A stretch of 64,000 nucleotides of DNA from Scyliorhinus canicula (Eukaryota). Shown in pieces: positions 4,061-58,942 of this stretch. Each line of letters begins with the position of its first letter. The stretch's first letter is position 1. The stretch is taken from assembly GCF_902713615.1 (NCBI RefSeq), contig NC_052158.1, positions 45,719,159 through 45,783,158 of the forward strand, read 5' to 3'. The notes beneath the pieces are model-generated. The model worked only from the letters and a program-made list of their open reading frames with translations. It made no database searches and was not told the DNA's origin. The translations under genes were made by a program, and so were the position numbers.

Positions 4061-5378
4061 CAAACCCAACCCGGGAAAAAGGGCCTGAAAGTTGGGATTT
4101 CCGTTCCAGGTCAGTGGAATAACTTGGAAGTCTGGCTATGTGACCCTGGAATGAATGAGGAGGATAGTTGGTGGAAGGTCTGTCTCAAAGTTTTAAAAAC
4201 TAAGAAGCATAAAACAGCGGTCATTCCTCATACACTCCCCATAACTCATCCAAACCAACCAATGTCCCAGCCTCCCCCCATAGCCTGTGCCCTCGACTCA
4301 TGGCTCCTCATACCCTCTATTCCAACCTCTGCCCCCACCTCCTCCACATGCCGCTTTATAGCCTCTATGCCAACTGAACGTCAACTAAAACCACCTCATG
4401 TCCACCACCCATTGCCCTTAAACCACCCATACTAACTCACCCACTATGCACAATGGCAGACATCAGGACCCATATTGCCATTAAATTAAATAAAAGTTCC
4501 AAATGTAAAACTTTTTATATTAACAAAAAAATTACTACATTTAAATTGATCAATTGCATTCTAACCACAAGCATTTATTTCAATTACATCCCCCATAAAA
4601 GCAATTTACAGTCTTAACTTCAAAGTGTCCACAACCATTTGGAGCTGACAATGAAGGTGTGAAATAGCAGGCACTCTACTGTGGTAACAGATGGTTGTGA
4701 AACCTGCCATGGAACACAAATCCAGTCAAGGCTTCTATCAACAGAGTGAAAGGCTCCAAACAGTTTTGTTGAAGGCAAGAGTTTTACATTTCTTTTGAGT
4801 TTGTCAGCTCCCTTTAACACTTCACCTTAACATTTTTGGCAATTGTTCTTGAAAGTTCCAATGAGCTCTCAGTTATGTGGATCTATGCAATTTAAACACA
4901 CATTCATGCCTAATTTTAGTGTTCTCAAAAGACGTCTTACTTTTCCCAAACTGCAGCTTACCTCCCCCAAAGCTGTCAATGTCCAAAAGGATACCATTCC
5001 ACACCGCAAGGGTACCCAATCTATCCAAATTAATCCAGAAATTTTTGTCCAGCTCCTAGCAGGTCAAATATGCACACATTAGGTTTCAATCACCTCTCAC
5101 CAGTAGATTCAGCTGCTGATTTCTCAGGACAACTGCCGAATGGATCATGCAAATCTTGATCCTAGCAATTCCTGGCCCCATGAAAATAGGAGGTGCTGTG
5201 ATCAGGTGGCATATGTGTAAGGGAGGGGGAAGAGAGAGAGACACTTCTAGATTCAGGCCTCTTCCGTCATTGTCCTTACTTCGTTGCAAAAACCCAGTCC
5301 AAAAAGAGAAAGATATTTCTCATGATGAAGAAGGAGGCAGGAAAATGAGGTTGAGGTGACAGTGTTGCAGGAGGAACC

Positions 5379-6199
5379 CTAATTCCTTCTGTGTCTCCCC
5401 AGTCCCCATGGCGTGACCTCTCCTGTACCAGAGGGATGTCCAGTAGCAGATGTCTCTGCACTGGTCTGCGGCTGACCAGAAGGTGCAGGCGCTACAGTCC
5501 GAGACAGAATCTTACTCATTTCATTCAGAGTTTCATTACTTCTTTGCAGGAGCTGACAAAGAACCTCATTCTGCTGTCTCAAAACCTCATTCTGCTGCTG
5601 AAGAATCTCATTGTTTCTTTGTAGATACTGGTTTTGAATCTCACTCTGCTGTCTCAACACCTCATTCTGCTGCTGAAGAATCTCATTGTTTCTTTCCAGG
5701 CTCTGGCTAACATCTGTCTTAAATTCAGTCAAAGTTTGCTGAAGCAAGTTAGAAGTGACCTGATAACTTTCTGTACTTTGAACCTGTTCCTGATGTAAGC
5801 GCTCAAAAGGTTTCAAATAATCTTCATTTTCTTCACCAGCAACATGGGCCTGGTGTTGTCCGTGTGCTGGTGGAGACGGTGGAGATTCTGCTCCCAAAGC
5901 CAGAGGTTCCTCACCACCAGAAGGTTCTGATCGCTCTCCCTCCACCACAGCAGCCAGAGCATCACAGGCCTCCTTCTTCACACAAACCACAATATTTAAC
6001 TTTAACTCATCAACACTACCCTCCAAATCAGACATCTTATCCTCCTGACACTCCTCTCCCTCCTCCACTGCAGCTGCCATGCCACATTGCTGTGAGGTAT
6101 TCACCTCCGTCCCTTCCTCATCAGCCCTTTCAGGAATCTCGGACGCTGCTGCCAACTCTCCTCCATCACCATCTGATGTGTCCATGAACACCCGTGTAT
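5379..6199 (-). CDS. Terminal coding exon of an acidic / coiled-coil protein (putative Harbinger Myb-like-protein C-terminal region)
   Basis: 270-codon ORF, acceptor ttttcttcctctgacAG at 6201-6200, heptad repeats NEILQQQ/NEVLRQQ, phase matches the upstream exon. Confidence 0.65.
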
Positions 6200-6287
6200 C
6201 TGTCAGAGGAAGAAAATCAGAATGTTATCTTTGTCACATAAATTAACTCTCCTCTTGATGATTTGAACATTGAGCTGCTGACATCAC

Positions 6288-6441
6288 CTTCGCTCATCCC
6301 CATATCTGATCCACCATTGGTTATCGTGGGGTTGGAGAGGCCAAACAGCTTCCTTGTGAACACCTGTTCAGTCGGCTCCTTGATGTACGGAACCCGCCCT
6401 CCAGTCAACGAGAGCTCCTGGGTGTTATGGACCAGATTTAC
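6288..6441 (-). CDS. Internal coding exon VNLVHNTQELSLTGGRVPYIKEPTEQVFTRKLFG...MSE
   Basis: Acceptor ttttattttatacctttAG (6443-6442), donor AAG|GTGATG (6287), 154 nt open frame; resembles the 'KxAHNxxExxxTGGGxPxIxxLT' segment after Myb/SANT domains in Harbinger-type proteins (recalled motif). Confidence 0.6.
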
Positions 6442-7077
6442 CTAAAGGTATAAAATAAAAATGAATCATGGCCAAGGCTTTGCTGTGCTGTCTTGTGACA
6501 CATTTTCCAAGTGTGGGAGACAGTTTTCAGCCTGCACCCAGGGGGACTTCTGATTGGAAATCAATCTTATGACAAAGTCAGAGCCATCTCCAAGGCAACT
6601 GCATTTTAGAACACCTCAGAAAATAATCTTTTAAAAAATCTTGTGATCTTTCTGTATTTTCAATGAGGATTAAAATTTCAAAAATTAACATATGTATTTA
6701 ATATTCAGATATTGCCCTCTTGTCCAACACAGGGAAACCTGTGCATAAACAGGAGCTTCTATGCATATTATGACTTCTTTTGATGATATTTGGCGATCTG
6801 GTCAAAGATTACATTAACCTTGAAATGCCTGGATTGACGGTGGGAGAGGTTGGAGACAGACACTGCTGAGACAGACAGTGCTTTGGAAGGACAGCTCCCC
6901 TGTGTGAGCACTGGAGGGTAAACAACACTGACAACTCTCCGTGTAAGGGAAACAGGTGAGCCTCAGTATGAATGCGCTGGTGTCTGTAGAGGTCTGATGA
7001 CCGTGAGAATGATTTGTCGCATACCTCTCACGTGACTGGTTCCTCACTGGTGTGAATGTGCTGGTGTGTGCAGAGGG

Positions 7078-7956
7078 TCAATGATTCAGGGAATGATTTG
7101 TTACATACTGTGCAAACACATCGGTGTACACGGAAGCCAATGAGTCTGAAAATAATTGGTCACGTACCTTGAATGGTAAGGGTTTCTCCCCTGTATGAAC
7201 ACGTTGGTGTGATAGAAGATGAGAGGATCGGTTGAAAGCTTTTCTACAATAGTCACACTTGAACGGTTTCTTTCTCTCCACTGTGTGAATGTGTCGGTGT
7301 TTACGAAGGGTCGATAAATCCACAAATGATTTGTCACACACCTCACACGCGAGCGGTTTCTCCCCTGTGTGAACACATTGGTGTGACAGAAGATGGGAGA
7401 ATTGGTTGAAAGTGTTCCTACAAAAATCACACCTGAACGGTTTCTCCCCTGTGTGAACGCGTTGGTGTTTCGAGAGGGTCGTTGAATCCACAAATGATTT
7501 GTTACACAACTGGCACTTGAATGGCTTCAACCCTGTGTGCATGGCATTGTGTCGATGGAGTGTCGATGGCATTGAGAATGATTTGTCACACACCTCGCAC
7601 TTGAATGGTTTCTCCCTTGTGTGAGTGCCTTTGTGTTGACGGAGGGTCGATGAATCCGAGAATGATTTGTCACACACCTCGCATGTAAATGGTTTCTCCC
7701 CTGTGTGAATGCGTTGGTGTCTACGGAGGGTCGATGACACCGAGAAAGATTTGTAACACAAGAAGCACGTGAACGGTTTCTCTCCTGTGTGAACACGTTG
7801 GTGTACACGGAGGGTCGATAAATTTGAGAATGACTTGTTACACACCTCGCACCTGAAGGGCTTCTCCTGTGTGTGAACCTTCTGGTGCCTGAGGAGGCTC
7901 ATGGATGTCACAAAACCTTCATCACAGACCTCACACTTGAATCGTTTCCACTCCAT
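7078..7956 (-). CDS. C2H2 zinc finger protein ZNF-A (9 intact fingers)
   Basis: CxxC-x12-HxxxH repeats with TGEKP-type linkers; in-frame donor AAG|GTACGT at 7168/7167 after finger 9. Confidence 0.92.
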   Translation of the reverse strand: MEWKRFKCEVCDEGFVTSMSLLRHQKVHTQEKPFRCEVCNKSFSNLSTLRVHQRVHTGEKPFTCFLCYKSFSVSSTLRRHQRIHTGEKPFTCEVCDKSFSDSSTLRQHKGTHTREKPFKCEVCDKSFSMPSTLHRHNAMHTGLKPFKCQLCNKSFVDSTTLSKHQRVHTGEKPFRCDFCRNTFNQFSHLLSHQCVHTGEKPLACEVCDKSFVDLSTLRKHRHIHTVERKKPFKCDYCRKAFNRSSHLLSHQRVHTGEKPLPFKVRDQLFSDSLASVYTDVFAQYVTNHSLNH

Positions 7957-8427
7957 GTGGCTGCCCTTGTGCTAATGGTGGTTCTTGCAGATGCACCTTG
8001 TGTGTTAGAAGATCTTATTGGCTTGTGGAGCCTCTCAAACAAAAAACTGATAGTTCAACAGCTCACCATAGAAATGAGTCATGAGGCTTGATGAATGATT
8101 GAAGCTCTCACCTCATTTGGAGTCCACTCACACTTCTTCCCAGCATCACCCTTACCAAACACCCACAGCAGAACCTTCAGAAAGATTGGTTCTGATGGAA
8201 GGCTCCACACCACTGACCAGTTTCTGATCTGATGATATGTCAAAGCTCCCCTGCCCTGACCAATTTCCAGATGATGGTTTTGCTGCCCAACCTTCTCTGT
8301 ATTGAGCAATGCTGTGAAGGGACTGGATGTCTTCCCACAGATGTGCAGTTGTTCCTTGGGTGATGATCAGGATGTATCTGTGGTGTGTATCCTCTCTGTA
8401 TTCTCTGGTGATGTACGATGCAGTCTA
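7957..8427 (-). other. Non-coding leader of the ZNF-A exon with relic fingers; splice acceptor at ~8428
   Basis: ttttcctgttttacAG acceptor, homologous to 23610-23935 and 59435-59900. Confidence 0.7.
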
Positions 8428-11299: not shown

Positions 11300-12132
11300 A
11301 GAGCAACAAGCTTTTTCCAAGAGTGGGGGTGTCAATTACAAGGGGTCCCGATTCGGCACTGGAGGAGTTCTGGAAGGGGGTGGCGAGGACGGTGTCAAGG
11401 GTGGTGGGATCCAGGGTCAAGCCAGGATGGGGACTCGCGATCTTTGGGGTTGGGGTAGAGCCGGGAGTGCAGGAGGCGAAAGAGGCCGGTGTGCTGGCCT
11501 TTGCGTCCCTAGTAGCCCGGCGAAGGATTTTGATACAATGGAAGGACGCGAGGCCCCCAAGCGTGGAGACCTGAATCAATGACATGGCGGGTTTCATTAA
11601 GCTAGAGAAGGTCAAATTCGCCCTGAGAGGATCGGTGCAAGGGTTCTTTAAGCGGTGGCAACCGTTCCTCGACTTTCTGGCTCAACGATAGGGTACTGGG
11701 ACAGTAGCAGCAGCAACCGGGGGGGTGGGGGGGGGGGAAACGATGACTATGTTTGTTTATTTTATTTAAATTTGATTTATTTAATTTTAATTTATGGTTA
11801 AGTTTTCTTGTTGGGGGGGTAGGGGGAGTGTGATACATGTGATGTTACGGTTTGGGGGGATTTGTGGGTGTTATGGGGCAGTTAGTTGCATATTATTATT
11901 TGTTGTTATATTTTTATATTTTCTGTAAAAAATTCCAATAAAAATTATTTTTAAAAAAAACAAGGAGTCACGATTTCAAGGTGAGAGGGGGAAAGTTTAA
12001 GGGAGATGTGCGTGAAAAGTTTTTTACGCAGTGGGTGGTAGGTGCCTGGAACGCTTTGCCAGCGGAGGATCTGGATCCGCATGGCTGGGAGGACCGAAGG
12101 GCCTGTTCCTGTGCTGTAATTTTCTTTGTTCT
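11300..12132 (+). mobile_element. CR1/HER1 3' fragment split by an L1 3' fragment (11350-11958)
   Basis: CR1 end matches rc of 61790-62110; L1 piece has an A-tail and near-TSD acaaggggtc / acaaggagtc. Confidence 0.8.
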
Positions 12133-14206
12133 CAGGTTACAAAAATAACCTGGGGAAGGAGCAGAGCTGAAGAGGCTTCCATTCAAACTGGCCCTGACCA
12201 AATTCCGATACCTGGGGTTCCAAATAGCCCACGGCTGGACACGGATCCACAAACCAAACATGATGAGTCTGGTGGAGGAATTTAAAAAGGATCTGCAGAG
12301 GTGGGGCTCACTCCCACTCTCCCTGGCAAGTAGAGTGCAGAAGATCAAGATGAACGTACTGCCCAGTTTCCTCTTCCTGTTCAGGTCTACATCCCCAACG
12401 CCTTTTTCACCACAGTGGACAAAATAATCATGGCGTTTGTTTGGGGAGGGAAGATCCCGAAGATTAGAAAGCAGGTCCTACAAAAGGAGAAGAAATGCGA
12501 GAGTCCTGGCCCTCCCTGACCCCCAGTTTTACCACTGGGCGACCACCGCAGAAAAGGTACGGGGGTGGGTCCAAGAACCAAGAGCGGAGTGGGTCAGGAT
12601 TGAGGAGAGCTCCTGTACTGGGACATCCCTCCGAGCACTGGCCACAATCCCACTCCCATCATCCCACCCAAGTACTCTCAAAGCCCAGTGGTTATGGCCA
12701 CACTCCGGTCGTGGAACCAAATGAGACAGCACTTTGGATTAACCGAGATGTTCACTATGGCCCGCACCTGCAAAAATCACAGGTTCCCACCGCAACAATG
12801 GATGCCTCCTTCAAAAGGTGGAGACAGGATGTGGGGAACACTGACTGGGGACACGTACAGGGACGGTAGAGTAGTCACCCTAGGGTACTCACGGACAAGT
12901 TCCAACTCCCAAGAGGAAAGGACCGGAGGTATGTACAGATCAAAAACATCCTCCAAAACGAAACGATGATGTATCCCCAGACACCAGGATACTCATTACT
13001 AGAACTATTGAATGCGGGTCAACTAGGAGAGGGGAACTATGCAGACATCTTTGGATGACTATGAGGAGGTACGCTCCCCACTGGATGAGACAAGAACACA
13101 ATGGGAGGTAGAGCTAGGCAAGGAAACAGGAGGACGACTCTGGATCGAAGCACTGCGTAGGGAAAACCTCACCTCCACATGAGCAGGGCTGAACCTAATG
13201 AAGCTAAAGATGTGCATGAATGAATGGGTTCTTCCTGCAGGTGGAGGACAGGTGTGAATGGTGCCAGGGAGGCCCAACCAATCACACCATATCTGGTCCT
13301 GCCCCAGATTTGCCGGGTACTAGATGTCCTTCTTTGAGCCCATGTCCATGATTGTGAGGGTGAAGCCGTGCCAACTAGTGGTGATCTTCGGGGTATCAGA
13401 GCAGCCAGAGCTCTTCACGGGGGGGGGGCAACACTTGGCCTTTGCCTCCCTGATCACACGCCAGAGGCTCCCGCTCGGCTGGCGTTTAACAGCACCACTC
13501 AAGGCTGCAAACTGGCTGTCTGACCTGGAAAGATTTCTCAGGCTGGAGAAAATAAAGTACGCTATCAGAGGATAGCTTCTGCAAGATGTGGAAGTTGTTC
13601 ACCAACTTGGTCAAAGAACTGTTTGTAGGCAGTAACCAATAAAGGGGGGGGGGGGGGGGGGGGGATCCAGAACATCACAAAATGAGGAATAGAAAGGAAG
13701 GGGAGAAGAACACGGAGGGGGGATACACCTGAAAAAAACACAGGACAGGTGGAGAAGAGGAAAATTGCAAGAAACAACGTGCTGGTAAATTACTGCTTGA
13801 ACAAGAGTGGCTGTGAATTTTTATAAATACGTGTTTTGGTCTTGTCATGGAAAGTTTGCAACGAAATGTTGAAAATCGTAATTAAAATATTTCAAAAATA
13901 TATCAGGGCAATTGTTAATTCAATGGAAATTTTGAACAATTATTTGAAGAAAAAACTCTTGCTGGACGCAAAGGAAAATATTGCTTCAGGGTAGGTGATT
14001 GAAGAGTTCTAGTTTATCCTAGGAAATTAGATACACTGCACTCACTCAGACTGCACATCCCAAATTCAGCTCTCACACACAGCACTGGGCAAAACTATCA
14101 AATCCAAGCTCAGGCTTCACAGAGGCCTTCAGGTAAACCCTTTAAAGACATTTTTAAGACATTTGAATAAATGTGTCTCTGCACCTCCCAGATAATTACA
14201 CCTCAC

Positions 14207-14917: not shown

Positions 14918-15599
14918 GCGCGGGATTTTTCGACCCCATGCTGGGTCAGAGAATCGCCGGGGGGCAGCGTGAATCCCGCCCCCGCCAGCTGCCGAATTCT
15001 CCGGCGCCAGAGATTTGGCGGGGGCGGGAATCGCTCGCAGCGCCCTCCCCCGGCGATTCTCCGACCCGCGATGGGCCAAAGTCCCGCTCTTTCTATGCAG
15101 GTTCCACCGGCGTAAATTGGACTAGGTCCCTTACCGGCAGGACCTGGCGGCGTGAGCGGGCTCCGGGGTCCTGGGAAGGGGGGGGGGGCGATCTGGCCCC
15201 TGGGGGTGCCCCCATGGTGGCCTGGCCCGTGATTGGGGCTCATCGATACGCGGGCGGGCCTGTACCGTGGGGGTACTCTATTCCTACGCGCCGGCCGTGT
15301 AAGTCTCTGCAATGGCCGGCGCAAAGGTGAACCCCCCCCCCCCTGTGCATGTGCGAGGATGACGTCAGCAGCCACTGACACTCCTGTACATGTGCGGACC
15401 CGCACCAGCCGGCAGAGTCCCTTCGGACCCAGCTGACACGGCTCCCAAAGCCTTCCACGCTGACCGGCGGGGCGCAAACCACTCTGGCGCCGGCCTAGCT
15501 CCTGAAGGTGCGGAGAATTGGCGGCCCGATGCCAGAGTTGTTCACTCCACACCGTCCCGCCGGGCCTCCCACCCCGCCGGGTACGGGAGAATCCCGCCC
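14918..15599. mobile_element. GC-rich MITE (PIF/Harbinger-like non-autonomous element)
   Basis: TIRs GCGCGGGATT...AATCCCGCCC, 3-bp TSD ATG; empty site seen in the paralog near 3735. Confidence 0.75.
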
Positions 15600-15995
15600 A
15601 TGCACAGGAGAGAGGGACATAGAAGAAAAGAGGCTAGTGGAGGCTGGGACCCAGGAGTGACAGGGACAAAGGAGAGATGGGGACACGAGAAAGTGAACTT
15701 GGAGAGAGAAACAGCAGACTGTCCGAGTGTTTGGAGAGTGTCTCTCAGAGAGACATGGGTGTCAATAAACAACACCTCCTCCTTGCTGCGTGAAATGGTG
15801 ACATCAGCCAAGAAGGATCTTCTTTACTTATGAAAATATTGAAATAACAGGTCAGCATGGATTGAGAAACTGGCAGCAGCTATACACAGATGCCTTGTTG
15901 CTGATAAAACAGGTGCAAGCCAATGCCACCAATGATGTCACTCACGCATGCTCACAATTGCTAAAGACATCTATATATATATTGATGGAGAAAGT

Positions 15996-16155
15996 GGGCG
16001 GGTTTCTCCATCGGCCGTCGCTGAAATCGGGAAAAGCGATTGGGCGGAGAATCAGTTTTGACACAAAAATTGTGACCGACACCGAGTTCACACCAAATGG
16101 CAATTCTCCAGTGCCTCAACAGCGGTGTCAATGCTTTCCACTCCGCACATACGTT
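15996..16155. mobile_element. Truncated MITE of related type
   Basis: Begins gggcgggtttctcc, subterminal ggagaatc motifs. Confidence 0.5.
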
Positions 16156-16159
16156 GGTA

Positions 16160-17430
16160 TACTATTGGGAGTGGCGATTGTTGCTGACCGCCACTCCAAC
16201 AGAATTCTTCGCTGGGTAATTAGAGAGGTGAAGGCCACAACGTCCGCCTTTCTCCCCTCCAGCAGCTCCGATACCTCAAAAATCGCCACTGGCTCAATCT
16301 CCTCCCCCAATAATCCTTTTTTTTTAAATGTTTTTTAAATATAAAGTGCCGAATTCTTTTTTTTCCAACTAAGGGGCAATTCAGCGTGGCCAATCCACTT
16401 ACCTAGTACATCGTTTAGGTTGTGGGAGTTAGACCCACGCAGACACGTGACCGAGATTCTTCGACCCCACGCTGGGTCAGAGAATCCCGGGGGTGGTAGG
16501 GCGCGAGAATTATGCTACGCCTCCCCGACGATTCTCCACCGCCAATTTTCGGGCGTCCGCGGGATTGCCGCCGCGCGGTCGGGGGCCGTTGAAAGCAGCC
16601 CTTCCGGCGATTCTCCGGGCCTCGACGGGCTGAGCGCCCGCTGGCGTGGGTTACGTGTGGTCCCACACGGCGGGACGTCTGAGTTCTGTCTGCGGGGGTC
16701 GTCCTGGTGGGGGGCTGCTGGGCCTCCACGGTGGCCTGGTCTATGATCGGGGCCTACCGATCGGCGGGTGGGCTATTTCCGTGGGGGCGTATGTTCCTCC
16801 GCGCCGGCCCCTGTAGAGCGCTGCCTTATTGCCCGGGGGCCAGCACGGAGACAGGAACCCACGTGCATGCACGAACTCGCACCGGCCACAGCACACATGC
16901 GCGGACTCACGCAGGCCACGCCGCGCCGGCTGGAGCAGCGGAGGCCACTCCGGTGCCGATCTAGCCCCCTAGGAAGGGGTGAATGCCTGACAATCGAGGA
17001 CCGTTGACGCCGGAGTGGTTTGCGCCGCTTTGCACACTGGCGTCAGAACGTAGCCACAGGTTGGAGAATCCTGGCCAGGGAGAATGTGCAAACACCACAC
17101 GAACACGGAGCCGGGGCAGGGATCGAACCCGGGTCCTCGGCGCCGTGAGGCAGCAGTGCTAACCTTTACGCCGCAATGCCGCCCTCTCCCCCACTATCCT
17201 TGTTAGCGCCGGGGACACTCCCGCCCAAAATCTTCCCAACTTTTTGCAGCCCAGAACATTCGAGTGTGATTCGCTGGTCTGCGTCCACACTTCTCACATT
17301 CATCTGCCACCCCCTGGAAGAACCCACTCATTCTTGCCCACATCATATGTACCCTGTGCAGCATCTTGAACTTATCAGGCTCATCCTTGCCTATCCATCC
17401 CCACTTGACCTGGAGTCGCAACGTGATTGA
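16160..17430 (-). mobile_element. L1 3' ORF2 fragment interrupted by a SINE (16320-16447, 17077-17183), itself interrupted by a MITE
   Basis: ADVVAFTSLITQRRILLEWRS and CEKCGRRPANHTRMFW peptides either side of the SINE halves. Confidence 0.75.
16448..17076. mobile_element. GC-rich MITE related to 14918-15599
   Basis: Same left end (ttcgacccca.gctgggtcagagaatc), right end ggagaatcctggcc; splits the SINE at agacacg|gggagaatgtgc. Confidence 0.75.
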
Positions 17431-27544: not shown

Positions 27545-29040
27545 TAAGTGTGGTGAAAGCTTTCGTCATTCATCAAACCTCATGAACCACTGACTCATTC
27601 TTGCAGTTAAGAGTTTGAGGAGTGTGAGGAGGACCCCCCAGGCTCATAGGATCTCTTACTACAGATGCACCTTGTGTAATATCACACAAGGACTGATACA
27701 TGGATGAGAAGCTATTCAAGTGTGAGGAGTGTGATCGCGCCTTTGCACAGTTATCGGCACTCGTGAATCACTGGCACATTCACACTGGGCCGATACCTAC
27801 ACGTGTGCTGTGTGTGACAGATACTTCTCGTAGTCAAATAATCTTCGCAATCACCGACAAATTCACACTGGGGAGAAACCATTCATGTATGATGTGTGTG
27901 AAACACAATTTTCATGATCATCGCATCTCCATGTACACCAGTGCAGTCACATGGGAGAAACCATTTCCATGTGAGATGTGTGACAAATCATTCTCACTGT
28001 TATCAATCCTCCACATACAGCAATGCATTCACACAGGGAGAAACCATTCACGTTGAGTGACAATTATTTGTCACATTTATTGATCCTCCACATAGGGGAA
28101 GAACCATTAAAAGGTGAGGTGCGTGACAAAGCATTTGCACATTTATTAACATTCGTGAATCATCATAGCATTCACATGGGACAAACCATTCACATGCAAT
28201 GTCTGTGACTGAAATGTCTGACATAATTATCACAGTCATTGCATCTCCACGTACGCCAGTGCAATCATACAGGGGAAAAACCAGTCACAAGTGAGGTGTG
28301 TGAGACATCATTCTCCCAGTTCATGAAGTCCGTAAACACTAATGCATTCACACGGGAGAAACCATTCAGATGTGAGGTCTGTGATAAATTATTCACACTG
28401 TTATCAAGCCTCTATGTATCAGACAATCCACACAAGGGAGAAACCGTTCAGAGGTTTGCAATAAAGCAATATCTACAAAACTTCTAAAACTCCAAATGAT
28501 TCACAAGGGAGAGACCCTTCAGGTCTGATACATGACCAAACCTTCACATGGTGATCACTGGTGAATGACTGATGTATTCACATAGAGGAGGGACTATTCA
28601 GATGTGAGGTGTATGACAAGTCTTTCTCAAAGTGATTGTTCCTCCGTGCCCACCAATGCATTCACACAGGTTAGACACTGTTCAATTGTGAGTTCTATGA
28701 TGTTGGTTTTGTGATGTCTTCAATCCTCCTGATGGAGCAGATAATTCACAAGTGGGCGAAACCCTCAGGAGTGAAGTTTGTAAGGTGGCTTTCCATTTCA
28801 CCTCCTGATTCACCAGAGCACAATCAGAGGGGAGGAACCACTCACATGTGAAATGAGCAGCAATTCTCACAAATAATACAGAGAGGATAGATGCTGCAGA
28901 CAGATCCTGGCCATCACCCAAGGGACACATGCACAACTGTGGGAAAATATCCGGTCCCTTTACAGCATCGCTCAACAAAGAGAAGGTTGGAAAGTGAAAC
29001 CATCTACTGGAAATCGATCGGGTCAGGGGAACTTTGAAGA
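27545..29040 (+). pseudogene. Decayed C2H2 zinc finger array ZNF-C
   Basis: MDEKLFKCEECDRAF...HWHIH followed by many frameshifted and stop-containing fingers; upstream linker homologous to 59740-59900. Confidence 0.85.
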
Positions 29041-34954: not shown

Positions 34955-36578
34955 TTGGAAGCAAATAGACGTATTAGCGAGAGGCAGCACGTTTTTGTGA
35001 AAGGGAGGTCGCGTCTCACTAACTTGATAGAGTTTTTTGAAGAGGTCACAAAGATGATTGATGCAGGTAGGGCAGTGGATGTTGTCCATATGGACTTCAG
35101 TAAGGCCTTTGACAAGGTCCCTCATAGCAGACTGGTACAAAAGGTCACACGGGATCAGGGGTGAGCTGGCAAGATGGATACAGAACTGGCTAGGTCATAG
35201 AAGGCAGAGAGTAGCAATGGAAGGGTGCTTTTCTGATTGGAGGGCTATGACTAGTGGTGTTCTGCAGAGATCAGTGCTGGGACCTTTGCTGTTTGTAGTA
35301 TATATAAAATGTAACTGGTCTGATTAGTAAGCTTGCAGACGACACAAAGGTTGGTGGAATTGCGGATAGCGATGAGGACTGTCAGAGGATACAATAGGAT
35401 TTAGATCGTTTGGAGACTTGGGCGGAGAGATGGCAGATGGAGTTTAATCCGGACAAAATGAGGTAATGCATTTTGGAAGGTCTAATGCAGGTAGGGAATA
35501 TACAGTGAATGGTAGAACCCTCAAGAATATTGACAGTCAGAGAGATGTAGGTGTACAGGTCCACAGGTCACTGAAAGGGGCAACACAGGTGGAGAAGGTA
35601 GTCAAGAAGGCATATGGCATGCTTGCCTTCATTGGCCGGGGCATTGTATAAGAATTGGCAAGTCATGTTAGCATGGTAGCATGGTGGTTAGCATCAATGC
35701 TTCACAGCTCCAGGGTCCCAGGTTCGATTCCCGGCTGGGTCACTGTCTGTGTGGAGTCTGCACGTCCTCCCCGTGTGTGCGTGGGTTTCCTCCGGGTGCT
35801 CCGGTTTCCTCCCACAGTCCAAAGATGTGCGGGTTAGGTGGATTGGCCATGCTAAATTGCCCGTAGTGTAAGGTTAACGGGGGGATTGTTGGGTTACGGG
35901 TATATGGGTTACGTGGGTTTAAGTAGGGTGATCATTGCTCGGCACAACATCGAGGGCCGAAGGGCCTGTTCTGTGCTGTACTGTTCTATGTTCTATGTTG
36001 CAACTGTACAGAACCTCAGTTAGGCCATACTTGGAGTATCGTGTTCAATTCTGGTCGCCACACTACCAGAAGGATGTTGAGGCTTTAGAGAGGGTGCAGA
36101 AGAGATTTGCCAGGATGTTGCCTGGTATTGAGGGCATTAGCCATGAGGAGAGGTTGAATAAACTTGGTTTGTTCTCACTGGAACAACGGAGGTTGAGGGA
36201 TGACCTGATAGAGGTTTACAAAATTATGAGGGGCTTAAAGAGTGGATAGTCAGAGGCTTTTTTCCAGGGTAGAGGGGTCAATTACTTGGGGGCATAGGTT
36301 TAAGGTGCGAGGGACAAGGTTTAGAGGAGATGTACAAGGCAAGTTTTTTTACACAGAGAGTAGTGGGTGCCTGGAACTCGCTGCTGGAGGAGGTGGTGGA
36401 AGCAGGGACGATAGTGACATTTAAGGGGCACCTTGACAAATACATGAATAGGATGGGAATAGAGGGATACGGAGCCAGGAAGTGTAGAGGATTTTAGTTT
36501 AGATGGGCAACATGGTCGGCACAGGGCTTGGAGGGCCGAAGGGACTGTTCTTGTGCTGTACTTTCCTGTGTTCTTTTT
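34955..36578 (+). mobile_element. 5'-truncated CR1/HER1 LINE with SINE insert (35669-35997)
   Basis: LTNLIEFFEEVTK, DFSKAFDKVPH, VQFWSPHYQKD, 3' tail gtgttcttt. Confidence 0.9.
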
Positions 36579-36951
36579 GAACACAATAACAGTTTATAAA
36601 GAAACAAAGCTGAAATATGCATTCAGCCAGTACTCCCAGACAATAGGTTTTACTCATTTATCAACCTGGGCCTTCACAAACAGAACAGCTTCAGGCCTGT
36701 TCAATTCTTACTTGTTTCCAACTCCACCAGAATGACCAACTGTCTTACTGAGATGAGAACAGAGTTCCCCACATGAGATTTTCAAAAGGATTTTAAACAA
36801 CTGATCCTGTCTTAAGCTGGTGACTGGATTTCCCCGCAGTTCAGCTGAGCTGTGGAGAGAGAATAATCTTTCCTTGGATCTTCAGAAAGAATCCATTAGA
36901 TGAAAGAGAGATCAGTCATGACCCTCCAGCTTCTGACATCAAAACACAATC

Positions 36952-38100
36952 ACAGAGACCATAAGATATAGGAGCAGAATTAGGCCCATCGGGTCTGCTT
37001 CGCCATTCAATCATGGTTGATATTTTTCTCATCCCTATTCTCCTGCCTTATCCCCATAACCCCTGATCCTCTTATTAATCAAGAACCTATCTATCTCTGT
37101 CTTAAAGACACTCAGTGATTTGGCCTCCACAGCCTTCTGCGGCAAAGAGTTCCACAGATTCACCACCTTCTGGCTAAAATTTCTCCTCATCTCAGTTTTA
37201 AAAGATTGTCCGTTTAGTCTGAGATTGTGCCCTCTAGTTCTAGTTTTTCCTACTAGGGGAAACATCCTCTCCACGTCCACTCTATCCAGGCCTCGCAGTA
37301 TCCTGTAAGTTTCAATAAGATTCCCTCTCACCCTTCTAAACTCCAACGAGTACAGACCCAGAATTCTCAACCGTTCCTCATACAAGAAGCTCTTCATTCC
37401 AGGGATCATTCTTGTGAACTTCCTCTGGACTCTTTCCAAGGCTAGCACATCCTTCCTTAAATATGGGGCCCAAACCTGCTCACAATACTCCAAATGGAGT
37501 CTGACCAGAGCCCTAAACAGCCTCAGAAGTACATCCCTACTTTTGTACTCTAGCCTTCTCGACATGAATGCGAACAATCATGTCAACTTCATAACTGCCG
37601 ACTGATCCTTCATGTTAACCTTGAGAGAATCTTGAAAAAGGACTCCCAAGTCCCCTTGTGCTTCTGATTTCCAGAGCATTTCCCCATTTATAAAATAGTC
37701 TATGCCTCCAATATTCCTTCCAGAGTTCATAACCTCACACTTTTCCACATTGTAATCTATCTGCCACTTTTTTGCCCACTCTCCCAGCCTGCCCAAGTCC
37801 TTCTGCAGCTCCCCTGCTTCCTCAATACTATCTGTCCCTCTACAGATTTTTGTATCATCTGCAAACCTAGCAACCATGCCTTCAGTTCCTTCTTCCAAAT
37901 CATTAATGTATATTGTGAACAGTTGTGGTCCCAACACAGACCCCCTGAGGCACACTAGTTACCTGCCATTCTGAAAAAGACACCTTTATTCCCACCTTCT
38001 GCCAGTCAACCAATCCTCTATCCATGCCAGGATCTTACCCTTAACACCATGGGCTCATCTTATTCAACAATCTCCTATGTGGCAGTTTGTCAGGCCTTCT
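36952..38100 (-). mobile_element. 5'-truncated CR1 LINE
   Basis: GSVLGPQLFTIYINDL, FADDTK, LEYCEQVWAPYLRKD. Confidence 0.9.
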
Positions 38101-38269
38101 GGAGGAAGAAACATTCCAGAGAAATCCTGACCAATCGGAAAGGGCCACTAATAAGGCCTTGCAATTCAAAACAGTCCATTGGCCGACAGCCAAGTCCATC
38201 ACGATGTATCAGCACTGATCTCCCTTGAATCTGCTGATCCGAATTCTGAATAGCTGTTGCAACTTGCCT

Positions 38270-41220
38270 TTGTTATAGGGCTTAGAAACTCCAAAGTGTG
38301 TTATGAAGTTCACCTGACCTATAACATTTATGTTGAATTTGGCTAGGATGAATACAAAAGCCTTCGCTTCAGATGTGATTCACCATATTTCCTAGACGAA
38401 AACAAGGTTTATTCTAAAAATGTAGTTAACATATATATATATATATAAACACAGCAACAATTTCTTATCAATTACAAACATAAAGACAACACACCAGCTG
38501 CAGTAATCTATGTTTATAACACTGAATGAATTCCCCCTGGGCAACACGGTGGCACAGTGCTTAACATTGCTGCCTCATGGCACCAAGGTCCCAGGTTCAA
38601 TCCCATCTCTGGCTCACTGTCTATGTCTTTCATTCCATTCTCCCAGTGTTTGCATGGGTTTCACCCGCACAACCCAAAGATGTGCAGCGTAGGTAAATGA
38701 GCCATGCTAAATTGCCCCTTAATTGGAAAAAATGAATTGGGTACGCAAAATTTATTTTTAAAAAATGGATTCCCCTTCAGCTGTTCCAATTCAGTAACAA
38801 AATACAATAAGCCAAAACCTGTTTCAAAGAAGTGGCCCAGCACACTGTATTCTCACTTGACTGGGACTGCTCCTTTCCCTGAGTTTCTGATCCAGTTTCA
38901 ACCAGCAATTTCAACCGGAAAGCAACTCTATCTTTAAAGTTGCCACGGCAGTTTGCCACCCCAATGTGCTTTTCACTGGAACAACTTGGAAAAATGAAAA
39001 CAGACAATAAACATACATACATTTTAAAACATCAAAACAGGCAAATATTTACAATAATACAGTCCATTTTAGTTCTTTGTCTTCCACCATTGAACCTGCT
39101 TCTCTTCATCACATTCGTGACAAAGCCTCGGCTATCATGTTTTCACATCCTCCCACATGTGTAAGTTTTAAATTATTTATTTTTTAAAAATATTTTTATT
39201 CTCCATTTTCACATTTCCTCCCGAATTTACACCCAACAATAAACAATAATCAGTAACGAATGCAATGTCAATCCCCATATCAATAACAACAATCCCATCC
39301 TCCCACCAAAACTTCCAAACATTAGCCCACATGTTAACATAAACAAATAACAAAAAGGAATCAAGAATCACCATAGTCATCATTAACACATAAAGTCCCA
39401 CCCCAACTCTCCCAACTGCCCCCCTAATGGTCGATGTAATCCAATTCTCAAAAGTGGATAACCCCATGAATTGTAGAACCCCTCCATCCTTCCCCTCAGT
39501 TCAAATTTGACCTTCTCAAGAGTCAAGAATTCCAGCAGCCCCCCCCCCCCCCCCCCCCCCCAGGACACAGGGTGGAGACGTTGATCTCCACCCTAACAGG
39601 ATCCGCCTTCGGGCGATCAACGAGGCGAAGGCTACAACATCTGCCTCCCCACCCGTTTCCAACCCCGGCTGGTCCGACACCCCAAATATGGCCACCCGAG
39701 CGCCCGGGGCCAGTTTCATGTGCACCACTTTAGAGATTACTCGAAAAACCTCCTTCCAGTAATTCTCCAGCTTTGGACAGGACCAAAACATATGAACGTG
39801 GTTTGCGGGGTCCTCCCCCAACAATGTTCACACACATCTTCTACCCCCTCAAAGAGCCGGCTCAACCTCGCCCTTGTGACGTGTGCTCCATATACCACCT
39901 TCAGCTTTATCAGCCCAACCTCGCGCACGAGGTGGAGGTGTTCACCCTCCGGAGCACCTCACACCAGAACCCCTCCTCCATACCCTCTCCCAACTCTTCC
40001 ACTTTGTCTTGATCCCTTCCAGCGGTGCCTTTTCTTCCAAAAAAGCCCGTAAACCGCCGACGCTACCCACTTCTCCAGTCCCGGTCGTCAGCATCTCCAG
40101 CAATGCAATGTGGAAGCCGGATCTACTGAGAAGCTCTGTATCTCCTTTCTGGCAAAGTCACAAACCTGCATGTATCTAAATATTTCCTCCTGCTTCAGTC
40201 CTTCTTTGCTCCCAGTTCCTTCAATCCTGCAAACCGACCCCGAAGAAACAAATCTTTTAGTGTCCTAATTCCTTTCTCCTCCCATCTCCGAAAACTTCCC
40301 TGGCTCAAATCTATGGTTCCCCTGAATTGGTATATGTTTTAAAATAAATGGCTGTAATAATAGACTCCATTGAAACAGTCTGCCATTTTTATTCTTGAAT
40401 TCCTCCAAAAACGTCAAAAGGGTTCTGATCAGTATATACAATTGTTTCAGAAGAATTGCTGGTAATATAAATGTTAAAATGTTGCAAAGCCAGCACCAAG
40501 CTCAAAGTCTCCTTTTCAATTGTTGAATACTTCCTCTGGTGGTCATTTAATTTTTTGGAAAAATATCCAATACCCAAATACTCCATTCCTTTGTTGTCTT
40601 CTTGCAAGAGCACGGCACTTACACCCACATCACTCGCCACCTTGTTTTGTGTAATTTAGGGTGGCCAACACAGGAGCAGTGGTTAACACAGCCTTTAGGC
40701 CTTCAAATGCCTGTTGACACTCCGCCGTCGACTGAAATTTGTTACGTTTCTTCAGTACGTCCATCAGTGGAGCAACCACGCTGCATAAAACAACTCAGGC
40801 CAAGAAATCTCATTATTTCCCTTTGTGTCAAAGGTATTGAGAACTCCCTAATAACTTTTATTTTCACATACCGTGGGACCATTTGTTCATTTCCAATTGT
40901 ATGGAAAAGGAACGTGACTTGGGCTTTTCCAAACTCACTTTTGGCTCGGTTTACCACCAAACCCGCCTCCTGAAGTAGATTGAATAACTCCATCAGATGC
41001 TTCAAATGGTCTTTCCATGCCTGACTAAAAATCACTAGATCGTCTATGTACACTGCACAATTGGGTATTCCTGAAATCACTTTGTTGAACTGTGGCTGGG
41101 GCATTTTTCATGCCAAATGCCATAACTTTGAATTGGTATATACATTATCATTTAGAGTCACAAAAGCTGAAATCTCCTTCACCCTTTCGGATAAAAGTAC
41201 TTTGAGTAAATCCAGTTTAG
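38270..41220 (-). mobile_element. Decayed Gypsy element (pol fragments 40330-41220, LTR-like part ~38270-39000) interrupted by SINE 38538-38765 and L1
   Basis: YIDDLVIFS (RT), ASDVGVSAVLLQ...YSTIEKETLSLVLAL (RNase H); LTR extent uncertain. Confidence 0.7.
39175..40330 (-). mobile_element. L1 3' fragment
   Basis: ANHVHMFWSCPKL, LEFLTLEKVKFELRG, A-rich tail at 39175-39200. Confidence 0.85.
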
Positions 41221-44990: not shown

Positions 44991-47900
44991 TAGGTTTCTC
45001 CTGAATTTCTAATTGGACTTATTACTGATTGTATTTCTGGACCTAGTTTCAGACTCCCCACACATGTGGGAACACCTTCTCTCCATTTACCCCCAAATCC
45101 TTAATTTTATAATTCATAATTATGTCCTCTCTCAGTCTTTTGTATGGAAAAGAGTGCCAGTCTGTTCAATCTTTCCTGATAGTTACAATCTCTCAAGTTA
45201 CAATCTCTCAATTTCATCCTTATCTATGTTTTTTGCACCATCACCAATTCCTTTCTGTCCTTTTTCAATATGTTGATCTGAACTGTGCACAGTCCCCCAA
45301 GTAGTCTAAACAAGGTTCCAGACAAGTTCAATATCACTTCTCTGCTTTTCAATTCAATTCCTCCAAATATTGGACCAAATAGACCCCATTTTGATATTTT
45401 ATGTTCTTGTTACTTCTAATGATTGATGAATCTGTAGCTCTGTCCTTGCTCAACTTGTAAATATGACCGTTGGTCCTCCCTAATCTCTCCAATTGAAATA
45501 ATTTGTCCCCAAGAAGACAAACTGTTGTTATTTCATCCTGTGGGAACGAAAGAGACTCACGGTTGGTGTGTTGCCTCCCAGGTGCCAGGGTTCGTGATGT
45601 CTCTGATCGTGTTTTTGGGATCCTTAAGGGGGAGGGGGAGCAGCCCCAAGTCGTGGTCCACATAGGCACCAATGACATAGGTAGGAAAAGAGATGGGGAT
45701 TTGAGACAGAAATTCAGGGAGCTAGGTTGGAAGCTGAGAGCTAGAACAAACAGAGTTGTTATCTCTGGGTTGTTACCCGTGCCACGTGCTAGCGAAGTGG
45801 CAATAAGGAGAGAGAGGAGTTGAACACGTGTCTACAGGGATGGTGCAGGAGGGTGGGTTTTGGTTTCCTGGATAATTGGGGCTCATTCTGGGGTAGGTGG
45901 GACCTCTACAAACAGGATGGTCTTCACCTGAACCAGAGGGGTACCAATATCCTGGGGGGGAGATTTGCTAGTGCTCTTCGGGGGGGTTTAAACTAATTCA
46001 GCAGGGAGATGGGAACCTAAATTGTACTCCCAGTGTACAGGATGTTGAGAGTAGTGAGGTCAGGGATAGGGTTAAAAGTTCGAAAGAGGGCACCGGCAAG
46101 CAAGATGCTGGTTTGAAGTGTGTCTACTTCAACGCCAGGAGCATCCGGAATAAGGTGGGTGAGCTTGCAGCATGGGTTGGTACCTGGGATCTCGATGTTG
46201 TGGCGTTTTCGGAGACATGGGTAGAGCAGGGACAGGATGGTTGTTGCAGGTTCCAGGATTTAGATGTTTCTGTAAGAACAGAGAAGATGGTAAAAGAGGG
46301 GTGGGGTGTGGCATTGTTAATCAAGGAAAGTATTACGGTGGCAGAAAGGACGTTTGAGGACTCGTCTACTGAGGTAGTATGGGCCGAGGTTAGGAACAGG
46401 AGAGGAGAGGTCACCCTGTTGGGCGTTGTCCATAGACCAAATAGTTCTAGAGATGTAGAGGAAAGGATAGCAAAGATGATTCTCGACAGGAGCGAGAGTA
46501 ACAGGGTAGTTGTTATAGGGGACTTTAACTTTCCAAATATTGACTGGAAATACTATAGTTCGAGTACTATAGATGGGTCAGTTTTTGTGCAGTGTGTGCA
46601 GGAGGGTTTTCTGACACAGTATGTAGATAGGCCAACAAGGGGCGATGCCACATTGGATTTGGTACTGGGTAATGAACCCGGCCAGGTGTTAGATTTAGAT
46701 GTAGGTGAGCACTTTGGTGATACTGATCACAATTCGGTTATGTTTACTTTAGCGATGGGCAGGGATAGGTATATACCGCAAGGCAAGAATTATAGCTGGG
46801 GGAAAGGCAATTATGATGCTATTCGGCAAGATTTAGGATGTATAGGATGAGGAAGGAAACTGCAGGGAATGGGTACAATCGAAATGTGGAGCTTTTTCAA
46901 GGAACAGCTACTGCGTGTCCTTGATAAGTATGTACCTGTCAGGCAGGGAGGAAGTTGTCGAGCAAGGGAACCGTGGTTTACTAAGGAAGTTGAAGCACTT
47001 GTCAAGAGGAAGAAGAAGGCTTATGTTAGGATGAGACATGAAGGCTCAGTTAGGGCACTTGAGAGTTACAAGTTAGCCAGGAAGGACCTAAAGGGAGAGT
47101 TAAGAAGAGCGAGGAGAGGACACGAAAAGTCATTGGCAGATAGGATCAAGGAAAACCCTAAGGCTTTCTATAGGTATATCAGGAACAAAAGAATGACTAG
47201 AGTAAGATTAGGGCCAATCAAGGATAGTAGTGGAAAGTTGTGTGTGGAATCAGAGGAGATAGGGGAAGCGTTAAATGGATATTTTTCGTCAGTGTTTACA
47301 CTGGAGAAAGATAATGTTGTCGAGTAGAATACTCAGGTACAGTCAACCAGGCTAGATGGGATTGAGGTTCACAAGGAGGAGGTGTTAGCAATTTTGGAAA
47401 GTGTAAAAATAGATAAGTCCCCTGGGCCAGATGGGATTTATCCTAGGATTCTCTGGGAAGCCAGGGAGGAGATTGCAGAGCCTTTGTCCTTGATTTTTAT
47501 GTCGTCTTTGTCGACAGGAATAGTGCCGGAAGACTGGAGGATAGCAAATGTTGTCCCCTTGTTCAAGAAGGGGAGTAGAGACAACCCTGGTAATTATAGA
47601 CCTGTGAGCCTTACTTCGGTTGTGGGTAAAATGTTGGAAAAGGTTATAAGAGATAGGGTTTATAATCATCTTGAAAAGGACAAGTTGATTAGCGATACTC
47701 AACACGGTTTTGTGAAGGGTTAGGTCATGCCTCACAAACCTTATTGAGTTTTTTGAGAAGGTGACCAAACAGGTGGATGAGGGTAAAGCGGTTAATGTGG
47801 TGTATATGGATTTCAGTAAGGCGTTTGATAATGTTCCCCACGGTAGGCTATTGCAGAAAATACGGAAGTATGGGATTGAAGGTGATTTAGCGGTTTGGAT

Positions 47901-57600: not shown

Positions 57601-58942
57601 GCAGATTTTCGTCCTTTGTTCCCCAGAGACTGTGAAATGTGCTCAGACGCCATTTTACAGTGGATTTCAGCGTTTTTTCTTTCTAAAAAGTTCAAGTTAC
57701 TTTTTCCTTTCGATCTGGACTTTTCACTCGCGATTTCTAGACTGAACCCTTTCTGTTCTGATAGTGATTGTTTGAGTTTTGCATCACTCAGTCCCTGTGC
57801 AGTTTGGTCTTTGAGCATACAGTACTGTTCAAATTTCATACAATGCTCTTCAAATTTTTTTAGTATTATTTGTAATTTGGTGCTGTCTTCATCTTTCAAG
57901 TATTTAGAGCAATTATATGTTTCTCTAGCTTCATGTCCTGCGATGAACAGTGCTATTTTCATTTCGTCTGAGGCTGCTTCTAAATCATTAGCTATGATAT
58001 ATAAATCGAACATTTATTTAAATCTTTTCCAGGCATTACTTAAATTACCGATTATGTTCAGCTGAGGTGGGGTTCCAACCAATATCATCGAATTAGTGAA
58101 GTCTTCCAAAGCTGAATGTCCGGTAGGAGTTTTCCTTGCCATTTTGGTCTTTCTGTGTCTGCAGCTTGTGTAATCTTGTAGTAAGCGTCTGAAGCCACTC
58201 TTGGTACCATGTGTTGTTCCTTGTGTCTTAATAAAGCTTGTAGTCTTAAAGTTGAAGTAGATGCTTTATTGTAAGTTTGTTCTTTCTTCAGTGCTTAACT
58301 TAAAGTTACATCGATGCTGCTTGTCTATGTCTTGCTACCAGTTCCCGTTCTGTGAAGTGTCTCCTGACTTCCTGTTCATCTGTATTTATATCTCTCCCGT
58401 GCTCAGGTGCTTGCTCAGTTGTATTGCATCTACACAGATATACAATCACCACAGTCGCGAGTGCCTGTTCCATTGTCGTTGGGTGCATGACCCATTGTCG
58501 CGAGTGCGTGTTCTATTGTCATCGGGTGCGTGTCCTGTTGTTGTCGCGAGTGCCTGTTCCATTGTTGTCGAAAGTGCGTGTCCCATTGTTGTTGTGAGTG
58601 CATGTTACATTGTTGTCAGGTGCGTGACCCATTGATGTCACGAGTGCGTGTCCCATTGTTGTTGCGAGTGCGTGTTCCATTGTCGCTGGGTGCATGACCC
58701 ATTGTCACGAGTGCGTGTCCCATTGTTTTCGTGAGTGTGTGTTCCATTGTTGTTGTGAGTTCGTGTTCCATTGTCATTGGATGCATGACCCATTGTCATG
58801 AGTGCGTGTTCCATTGTTTTTGTGAATGCGTGTTCCATTGTTGTCGCAACTGCATGTCCCATTGTTGTTGCGAGTGTGTGTTCTATTGTCATCGGGTGCG
58901 TGACCCATTGTTGTTGCGAGTGTGTGTCCCATTGTCGTTGTG
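54601..58942. repeat. Minisatellite (~19-24 bp unit GAGTGCGTGTTCCATTGTTGTCGC) at 54601-54864 and 58454-58942, split by an LTR element
   Basis: Degenerate tandem units on both sides of the insertion. Confidence 0.85.
54865..58453 (-). mobile_element. Non-autonomous Gypsy-type LTR element with Gag N-terminus and low-complexity ORF, no pol
   Basis: LTRs 54865-55105 and 58210-58453, TSD GTCGC, PBS TGGTACCAAGAGTGG (tRNA-Leu-like), PPT AAAAAAGGGGGGA, Gag motif GNLSNAWKRFK*MFDLYIIANDL from ATG 58142. Confidence 0.9.

Follow-up and report, generated by a model that had tools for sequence, protein, structure and literature searches.

A stretch of 64,000 nucleotides of the genome of the catshark Scyliorhinus canicula (contig NC_052158.1, positions 45,719,159 to 45,783,158; hereafter the window) contains, between positions 7956 and 5379, a locus in which an array of nine C2H2 zinc fingers is joined to a C-terminal tail homologous to the non-Myb part of a Myb_DNA-bind_5 gene of sharks and rays. 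This locus is probably a real protein-coding gene with three coding exons and a member of a family of shark proteins that combine fingers with this tail. Unless another locus is named, coordinates refer to the window; the gene and its exons are located on the minus strand, and dinucleotides and other letters are written in the coding sense, with ^ marking the exon boundary. The gene comprises the following elements.

7168 to 7956, minus strand: coding exon 1, with the ATG at 7956 and nine intact C2H2 fingers connected by TGEKP-type linkers, ending in ...HTGEKPLPFK
7160 to 7170, minus strand: donor 1, last exon base 7168, AAG^GTACGTGA, read as TTC AAG^GTACGT at 7168/7167
7167 to 6442, minus strand: intron 1, 726 nucleotides, starting with decayed fingers (6814 to 7167), the rest being 6442 to 6813
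6442/6441, minus strand: acceptor 1, pyrimidine-rich, ...tttataccttTAG^G
6288 to 6441, minus strand: coding exon 2, 154 nucleotides, 51 codons, stop-free, phase 0 to phase 1, post-Myb segment VNLVHNTQELSLTGGRVPYIKEPTEQVFTRKLFGLSNPTITNGGSDMGMSE
6288/6287, minus strand: donor 2, GAAG^GTGATG
6200 to 6287, minus strand: intron 2, 88 nucleotides, phase 1, read from the sequence
6200/6199, minus strand: acceptor 2, ...ctctgaCAG^A
5379 to 6199, minus strand: coding exon 3, 273 codons, ending in a TAG stop codon at 5381-5379

A scripted join of the three exons (7956-7168, 6441-6288, and 6199-5379) generated a single frame of 789 + 154 + 821 = 1764 nucleotides, corresponding to 587 codons and one terminal stop codon. 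In exon 1, Pfam detected zf-C2H2 in nine stretches (E = 5e-49) and zf-H2C2_2 (E = 6e-67), and a pattern count gave nine matches to C-X2-C-X12-H-X3-H connected by TGEKP-like linkers, as in Krüppel-type C2H2 proteins. A degenerate tenth finger supplies donor 1 through its V-C codons, and the region following the donor (6814 to 7167, minus strand) contains the remnants of fingers 10 to 12, in which cysteines have been lost, the frame is shifted, and TGA occupies the place of a first cysteine. At the protein level, the junction reads ...HTGEKPLPFK^VNLVHNTQE. The splice sites and the three-exon frame had been named in an earlier reading of the window made without database searches (the sequence-only reading), and they were confirmed by direct reading, by the S. 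torazame ortholog, and by the junctions of annotated paralogs. The first AATAAA located 3' of the stop codon, at 4574-4579 (minus strand), is a candidate polyadenylation signal about 800 nucleotides downstream and would imply a long 3' untranslated region; S. torazame and the window share 93.6% identity in the 3' flank.

The tail open reading frame (ORF) matched a deposited protein of Scyliorhinus torazame, P0001, at 89% identity. The orthologous locus (BFAA01003921.1, L001, positions 35468-40101) is colinear with positions 8659-4000 of the window and displays 92% DNA identity over 4697 nucleotides. The three-exon frame is also open in S. torazame, where it has 588 codons because a single codon of exon 2 was inserted or deleted in frame. 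The two species have identical sequences at acceptor 1 and at both donors, and acceptor 2 retains CAG. Identity amounted to 96.7% for exon 1 (without gaps), 94.2% for exon 2, and 95.5% for exon 3, versus 91.3-93.6% for introns and flanks. For the finger exon, the ratio of nonsynonymous to synonymous substitution rates (dN/dS, omega) was 0.30-0.43, and 35 of the 36 base-contact residues were unchanged, a single one being different. The lesions of the finger remnants in intron 1 (lost cysteines, frameshift, and TGA) were also present in S. torazame. Thus, the coding constraint on the array ends at donor 1. This is expected from splicing at this position, although a fingers-only protein ending at position 7078 would look alike.

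The same architecture was found in other sharks. Two protein searches with the tail returned 54 and 58 shark proteins at E ≤ 1e-10, many of which had C2H2 Pfam domains located N-terminal to the tail. The matching species, all of them sharks, were S. torazame, S. canicula, Mustelus asterias, Cetorhinus maximus, and Carcharodon carcharias. The family comprises at least 60 annotated proteins from these four genera, designated "zinc finger protein NN-like" (e.g. "zinc finger protein 98-like") or "uncharacterized" in RefSeq, and more than 50 of its members have tails 64-89% identical to that of the window gene. The locus had initially been viewed as a single chimera, a view that has to be abandoned in favor of one member among many. 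A scan for the junction pattern took in 33 proteins, including 28 without a Myb domain. The junction ...HTGEKPFxC(E/K)^V(K/N)L(A/V)HN.QE... was present in about 25 of these 28 proteins (typically ^VKLAHN), the remainder being tail-only or odd models. The window gene displays this junction (...KPLPFK^VNLVHNTQE) followed by a tail with the acidic region and the Gln/Asn-rich helix. Exon mapping placed the donor on the finger codons C-(E/K)^V-C, as TGTGAG^gt in P0005 of C. maximus (locus L002) and as AAG^GTATGT in P0024 of S. canicula (locus L006), with the same exon boundaries in both genes. Conserved splice sites and the annotated models of related genomes suggest that the junction is used in the mRNAs of the family, and the window gene itself would be expected, on the same sequence grounds, to be transcribed and spliced in vivo. 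In the paralog P0024 (LR744042.1, L006, 4056-12483), the intron separating fingers from tail spans 9.2 kb; about 8.4 kb of it is absent from the intron of the window gene, and parts of this extra DNA have interspersed matches at other positions of the window.

Four additional donor-like sites, in-frame GAG^GTGTGT with last exon bases at 7846, 7678, 7594, and 7342 (minus strand), are present in the finger exon and correspond to the C-E-V-C codons of fingers 2, 4, 5, and 8. Since paralogs are annotated as splicing at comparable finger-codon sites, isoforms combining fewer fingers with the tail are conceivable.

It could be argued that the locus consists of two units, a fingers-only protein ending at 7078 and a tail left over from a duplicated Myb gene, in decay or transcribed on its own, that gene predictors join to the fingers by homology. 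We consider this possibility unlikely. The read-through ORF of the finger exon does run past donor 1 to its own stop codon at 7078, and several observations weigh against a functional fused gene. Selection in related sharks had been proposed by the sequence-only reading as a means of checking the chimera, and this comparison supported only the finger half: the fingers are constrained, but the tail is not visibly so. In the window/S. torazame pair, dN/dS was 0.6-0.8 for exon 2 and 1.2-1.6 for the tail exon, with 30 amino-acid versus 7 synonymous differences. The tail is therefore without visible purifying selection in this pair, and its omega fits relaxed constraint or a recent loss of function as well as diversifying selection. 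Comparison with the Cetorhinus copy gave dN of 0.116, dS of 0.215, and omega of 0.54-0.8. Some annotated members of the family are tail-only models, and the fused 587-residue product was not among the annotated proteins retrieved by the two tail searches. The deposited S. torazame model P0001 has the same donor and tail and other upstream exons. Only one of the finger genes in the 64-kb window bears a tail, and the oligomerization and effector roles that the tail may have are deduced from its composition and from a model of the monomer only. In P0001 (L001, 10001-38758), the 5' exon of a finger unit located about 25 kb upstream and small exons are joined to the tail, and the nine-finger coding sequence is skipped; this layout is either a prediction artifact or a hint of splicing across units.

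Other observations argue for the fused gene. Independent annotations of four genera arrived at the same junction, and the S. torazame ortholog keeps all four splice sites. Methionine codons of exon 2 are only late and internal, and the tail therefore requires an upstream coding exon. Dozens of paralogs that differ by 20-40% have an uninterrupted 273-codon ORF. Finally, the run of intact fingers extends precisely to the donor, the fingers that follow being dead in both species.

In the Cetorhinus protein P0005 (LOC144695212), two fingers and a Myb_DNA-bind_5 domain (PF13873, residues 77-154, E = 4e-13) precede the tail. The exon homologous to exon 2 of the window gene opens at residue 150 of this protein, follows the Myb exon, and is 69% identical to exon 2. 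The middle exon thus does correspond to the segment following a Myb/SANT domain, as had been proposed. Finger-less Myb genes of sharks and rays were identified in an exhaustive search with the Myb domain and post-Myb segment of Cetorhinus.

S. torazame, P0071, 385 residues: finger-less Myb_DNA-bind_5 gene
S. canicula, LOC119952172, 389 residues: finger-less Myb_DNA-bind_5 gene
Mustelus P0067, Heterodontus P0066, Pristiophorus P0070, Pristis P0073, and Narcine P0076: finger-less homologs
Mustelus, LOC144505582: elasmobranch Myb_DNA-bind_5 gene

The elasmobranch genes are automatically named "uncharacterized" or "Myb/SANT-like DNA-binding domain-containing protein". With the exception of the more divergent Narcine protein, the finger-less proteins consist of a Myb domain, the post-Myb segment, an acidic region, a Gln/Asn-rich helical region, and a basic C-terminus. 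They are homologous to the window gene in all of these parts except the first, and differ from it by an N-terminal Myb exon and the lack of fingers, the window gene having nine fingers in place of a Myb exon. In BLASTP comparisons, about 270-310 residues of the window tail, nearly its full length, aligned with P0067, P0071, and P0207 at 34-38% identity (E = 7e-30 to 6e-22). The exon order is as follows.

S. torazame P0071: Myb exon (ending in phase 0), post-Myb exon (ending in phase 1), and tail exon; second intron of 84 nucleotides
Cetorhinus P0005: finger exon, 252-nucleotide Myb exon (phase 0/0), post-Myb exon, and tail exon; last intron of 87 nucleotides
Window gene: finger exon, post-Myb exon, and tail exon; last intron of 88 nucleotides

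Intron positions and phases are identical between the window tail and P0071. Pfam gave no hit above the cut-off in exon 2 or exon 3, and the tail is thus not assigned to PF13873 by the presence of the domain; BLASTP and the shared gene structure establish that what remains is homologous to the non-Myb part of PF13873 proteins. A CCDC84 match on the tail exons scored 24.9 for a cut-off of 25.3 and was dismissed as sub-threshold coiled-coil noise. Together, these comparisons indicate that the immediate donor of the tail is the three-exon Myb_DNA-bind_5 host gene of sharks and rays (P0071, P0207, P0067, P0066, and P0073). In S. torazame, P0071 occupies 1.6 kb (CM105026.1, L003, 3001-4646), its three exons lying antisense in the span or intron of a gene encoding 1148 residues.

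The window gene has lost the Myb exon. None was detected in the window by tblastn with a very permissive threshold, in agreement with the sequence-only reading, which had seen no such exon upstream. Alignment at the DNA level paired positions 6958-6702 of the window with 7684-7933 of the Cetorhinus locus L002, and positions 6707-5008 with 12043-13735. Since blocks that adjoin in the window (junction at about 6702-6707) are separated by 4.1 kb in Cetorhinus, the window is devoid of these ~4.1 kb, which include the Cetorhinus Myb exon (L002, 11745-11996). The Myb exon is also absent from the S. torazame locus L001 and from the S. canicula locus L006, the latter keeping both flanking blocks. The form with fingers, Myb domain, and tail survives in Cetorhinus (P0005) and Carcharodon (P0054, "zinc finger protein 99-like"). 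These genes contain the same fusion as the window gene, with a donor in the finger codons C-E^V and post-Myb and tail exons that are 75% identical, but they retain the 252-nucleotide Myb exon and encode only two fingers instead of nine. In a maximum-likelihood tree of the tails, the Myb-less carcharhiniform copies formed a single clade (96/95), suggesting that the Myb exon was lost once. The window gene and P0001 grouped together (100/99), at a distance resembling that of a S. torazame/S. canicula pair. The replacement of the DNA-binding domain of a transposon by a finger array, as originally proposed, is thus half right: the Myb exon was lost and the fingers were kept, but the donor was a host gene and not a transposon copy.

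These data also bear on the possibility that the tail is a high-copy neutral fragment of a transposable element that chanced to sit downstream of a finger gene. Shark genomes contain many copies of the tail, the window is rich in fragments of long interspersed nuclear elements (LINEs), and one ortholog pair has a dN/dS close to or exceeding 1, as such a fragment would display. Against this, the tail is single-copy in the window, which also led us to reject it as a within-window repeat; at each of the four loci read (the window, L001, L002, and L006), a finger exon of matching orientation precedes it, and the introns are the same; the ORFs are intact across paralogs; the homology is to a host gene of sharks and rays that has three exons at the same positions in S. 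torazame; and neither terminal repeats nor a transposase were seen, no search dedicated to terminal repeats having been made. We regard a neutral origin as very improbable.

A separate question is whether the donor gene itself derives from a Harbinger transposon. It carries PF13873, the domain of NAIF1. NAIF1 and MSANTD1-4 have been treated as domesticated Harbinger Myb-like genes, whereas MYPOP, ZSCAN20, PRDM11, and TSNARE1 are only putative further cases (PMC9392472). The nearest relatives of the donor gene outside elasmobranchs are automatically named MYPOP-like, and one more distant shark match is NAIF1-like. Comparison of the tail with Harbinger- and NAIF1-type proteins, for which the sequence-only reading had anticipated a resemblance, gave a mixed outcome: the tail is homologous to the tails of PF13873 genes, but its match to the NAIF1-like C-terminus is limited to the post-Myb motif. 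An hhalign comparison of a 32-sequence tail profile with a shark NAIF1-like protein (P0152) and a paddlefish MYPOP-like protein (P0098) detected nothing significant beyond this 22-column motif (E = 0.043). Relative to Harbinger-type Myb-like proteins such as NAIF1, MYPOP, MSANTD3/4, and TSNARE1 (PMC9392472), the donor gene shares PF13873 and has a post-Myb motif resembling that of NAIF1-like proteins, its similarity to the NAIF1 and MYPOP groups being limited to the Myb domain and this motif; the window gene has no Myb domain, and its acidic and helical parts are without detectable similarity to NAIF1- and MYPOP-like proteins. No transposase was called near P0071. Within 8 kb of a teleost relative (P0087), neither a called transposase nor a large ORF was present, the called genes and ORFs from 110 codons upward being considered. 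A Harbinger accessory protein would be encoded by an element flanked by terminal inverted repeats beside a DDE_Tnp_4 transposase gene; the window gene is located in a cluster of finger genes, and no terminal repeats were seen, although no systematic search for them was made. In the absence of both a transposon context and a C-terminal match to NAIF1- or MYPOP-like proteins, the Harbinger origin is therefore proposed only at the family level, where PF13873 membership and the literature make it probable.

The tail might still bind a transposase, as Harbinger Myb-like proteins do, with the fingers guiding or titrating a HARBI1-like nuclease or another partner of the parental protein. The nuclease-interacting regions of ALP2, HDP2, NAIF1, and the Ping Myb protein are C-terminal and located outside of the Myb domain (PMC7282668), HARBI1 and NAIF1 have both been reported in cartilaginous fishes (PMC9392472), and the donor gene carries the domain of NAIF1. 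In addition, a language-model feature search with the Myb-less tail led to Myb_DNA-bind_5 clusters including NAIF1, at a score of 0.81, which we treat as a lead only. However, the profile comparison revealed nothing significant past the 22-column motif, and no transposase was found near the donor gene or, among the genes and ORFs considered above, near its teleost relative. Retention of transposase binding therefore appears distinctly improbable.

The architecture of the tail was modeled with AlphaFold2 on the tail of the S. torazame ortholog, using the 32-sequence alignment. A short conserved helix was predicted over ...FTRKLFG... in the exon 2 segment, followed by about 140 disordered residues and then by a long helix. 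In the window, three regions encoded by exon 3 were delineated.

5814 to 6199, minus strand: acidic region, predicted to be disordered, with 33 Asp/Glu versus 7 Lys/Arg in 129 residues of the window protein
5493 to 5813, minus strand: long Gln/Asn-rich helix of about 105 residues (AlphaFold2 helix 182-287 of the ortholog tail, predicted local distance difference test (pLDDT) above 90)
5379 to 5492, minus strand: Ser/Pro/Gly-rich end, disordered according to sequence and model, then basic GLGRHRRN and TAG

The acidic region is homologous to that of the parental Myb proteins. The long helix, 31% of which is Gln or Asn, consists of heptads of the type NE(I/V)L(Q/R)QQ encoded by 21-nucleotide tandem repeats (TRF period 21), varies in length among paralogs, and is a candidate coiled coil. 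Basic C-termini (...RGRGRRRKN and ...RGRRARN) are also found in Cetorhinus and in the parental Myb proteins.

The simplest history that accounts for these genes has four steps. A Myb_DNA-bind_5 gene of the NAIF1/MYPOP type would have been duplicated downstream of a finger exon; codons of a finger itself, C-(E/K)^V-C, would have been recruited as a splice donor; the symmetric (phase 0/0) Myb exon, at first retained as in Cetorhinus and Carcharodon, would have been taken out by a single deletion in the ancestry of Scyliorhinus and Mustelus; and the Myb-less gene would have been amplified. Fingers located beyond the donor would then have decayed within the intron. The family has expanded in galeomorph sharks. 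In the resulting protein, the fingers would provide sequence-specific DNA binding, the Gln/Asn-rich helix could form homo-oligomers or hetero-oligomers with paralogs and perhaps with the parental Myb protein, the acidic disordered region could act as an effector or cofactor-binding surface, and the basic C-terminus could serve as a nuclear-localization signal. The tail would thereby play the part of KRAB, SCAN, or FiNZ in other lineage-specific finger families, yet at the C-terminus. KRAB zinc-finger proteins are not known from galeomorph sharks. In plants, ALP2 connects ALP1 to Polycomb repressive complex 2 (PRC2). On a speculative view, which we hold to be rather unlikely, galeomorph sharks evolved a large "programmable" finger family in which the tail represents the non-DNA-binding, partner-binding portion of a Harbinger-type Myb protein, HARBI1-like domesticated nucleases or their chromatin partners are delivered by the fingers to sequence-specified targets such as transposons, and in-array donors vary the number of fingers.

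The remainder of the window contains the following features.

8243 to 8407, minus strand: conserved block of about 165 nucleotides upstream of the finger exon, detected by tblastn with the N-terminus of P0001
22629 to 23609, minus strand: intact C2H2 array ORF, 326 residues, about 10 fingers, with no tail exon in the window
59901 to 61100, plus strand: intact C2H2 array ORF, 399 residues, about 13 fingers, with no tail exon in the window
62150 to 63649, minus strand: LINE fragment, reverse-transcriptase ORF (RVT_1, E = 1e-34)
46113 to 46850, plus strand: LINE fragment, apurinic-type endonuclease ORF (Exo_endo_phos, E = 1e-15)
55468 to 56841 and 57414 to 58013, minus strand: ORFs of 457 and 199 codons without a Pfam match

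The presence of two tail-less finger ORFs beside a tail-bearing gene indicates that the cluster mixes both kinds. In the same tblastn search, the conserved block recurred upstream of three further finger-gene units, at 23917-23765 (minus strand), 59456-59638 (plus strand), and 28876-29040 (plus strand), and is possibly a shared 5' leader or promoter-proximal exon. P0001 translates this block as its N-terminal exon, which is closer to the copy at 23917-23765 (86%) than to the copy beside the window gene (67%). The G+C content is 0.59 at 15001-17000, versus about 0.45 elsewhere in the window, and this segment may be a CpG island.

The shark family resembles the KRAB, SCAN (ZSCAN20), and cyprinid FiNZ zinc-finger families (PMC10547256), which likewise are clustered, duplicate rapidly, and carry one effector module; the partner of the fingers in ZSCAN20 is also a putatively Harbinger-derived Myb sequence (PMC9392472). 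In contrast to these families, the shark module is C-terminal, is reached through a donor located within the array, has no known Pfam domain, and comprises only the part of a Myb gene that does not bind DNA. The joining of this type of Myb domain to modules of zinc-finger families is not restricted to the shark family: a newt protein (P0077, Pleurodeles waltl) has C2H2 fingers together with Myb_DNA-bind_5, and P0115 has KRAB together with two Myb_DNA-bind_5 domains. The paralogs are already present in RefSeq as unnamed models, and fusion of finger arrays with transposon-derived domains is a known type of event. A shark finger family characterized by a Myb-less tail of the NAIF1/MYPOP type was not encountered in full-text searches of the literature, which were limited and do not prove absence.

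The stages of assembly are all visible in living species, as a free Myb gene, as fingers followed by Myb domain and tail, and as fingers followed by tail after deletion of the Myb exon. They reveal a simple route by which a finger array may acquire a new C-terminal domain, the recurrent C-E-V-C codons (GAG^GTGTGT) being ready-made splice donors. Lineage-specific zinc-finger families are central to the control of transposons in genomes, and are defined by a shared effector, such as KRAB in tetrapods and FiNZ in cyprinid fish. Sharks seem to have built a zinc-finger family of their own around an effector tail that is probably derived from a transposon. If partners of this tail are found, the family would provide a test of convergent effector capture by finger arrays in cartilaginous fishes.

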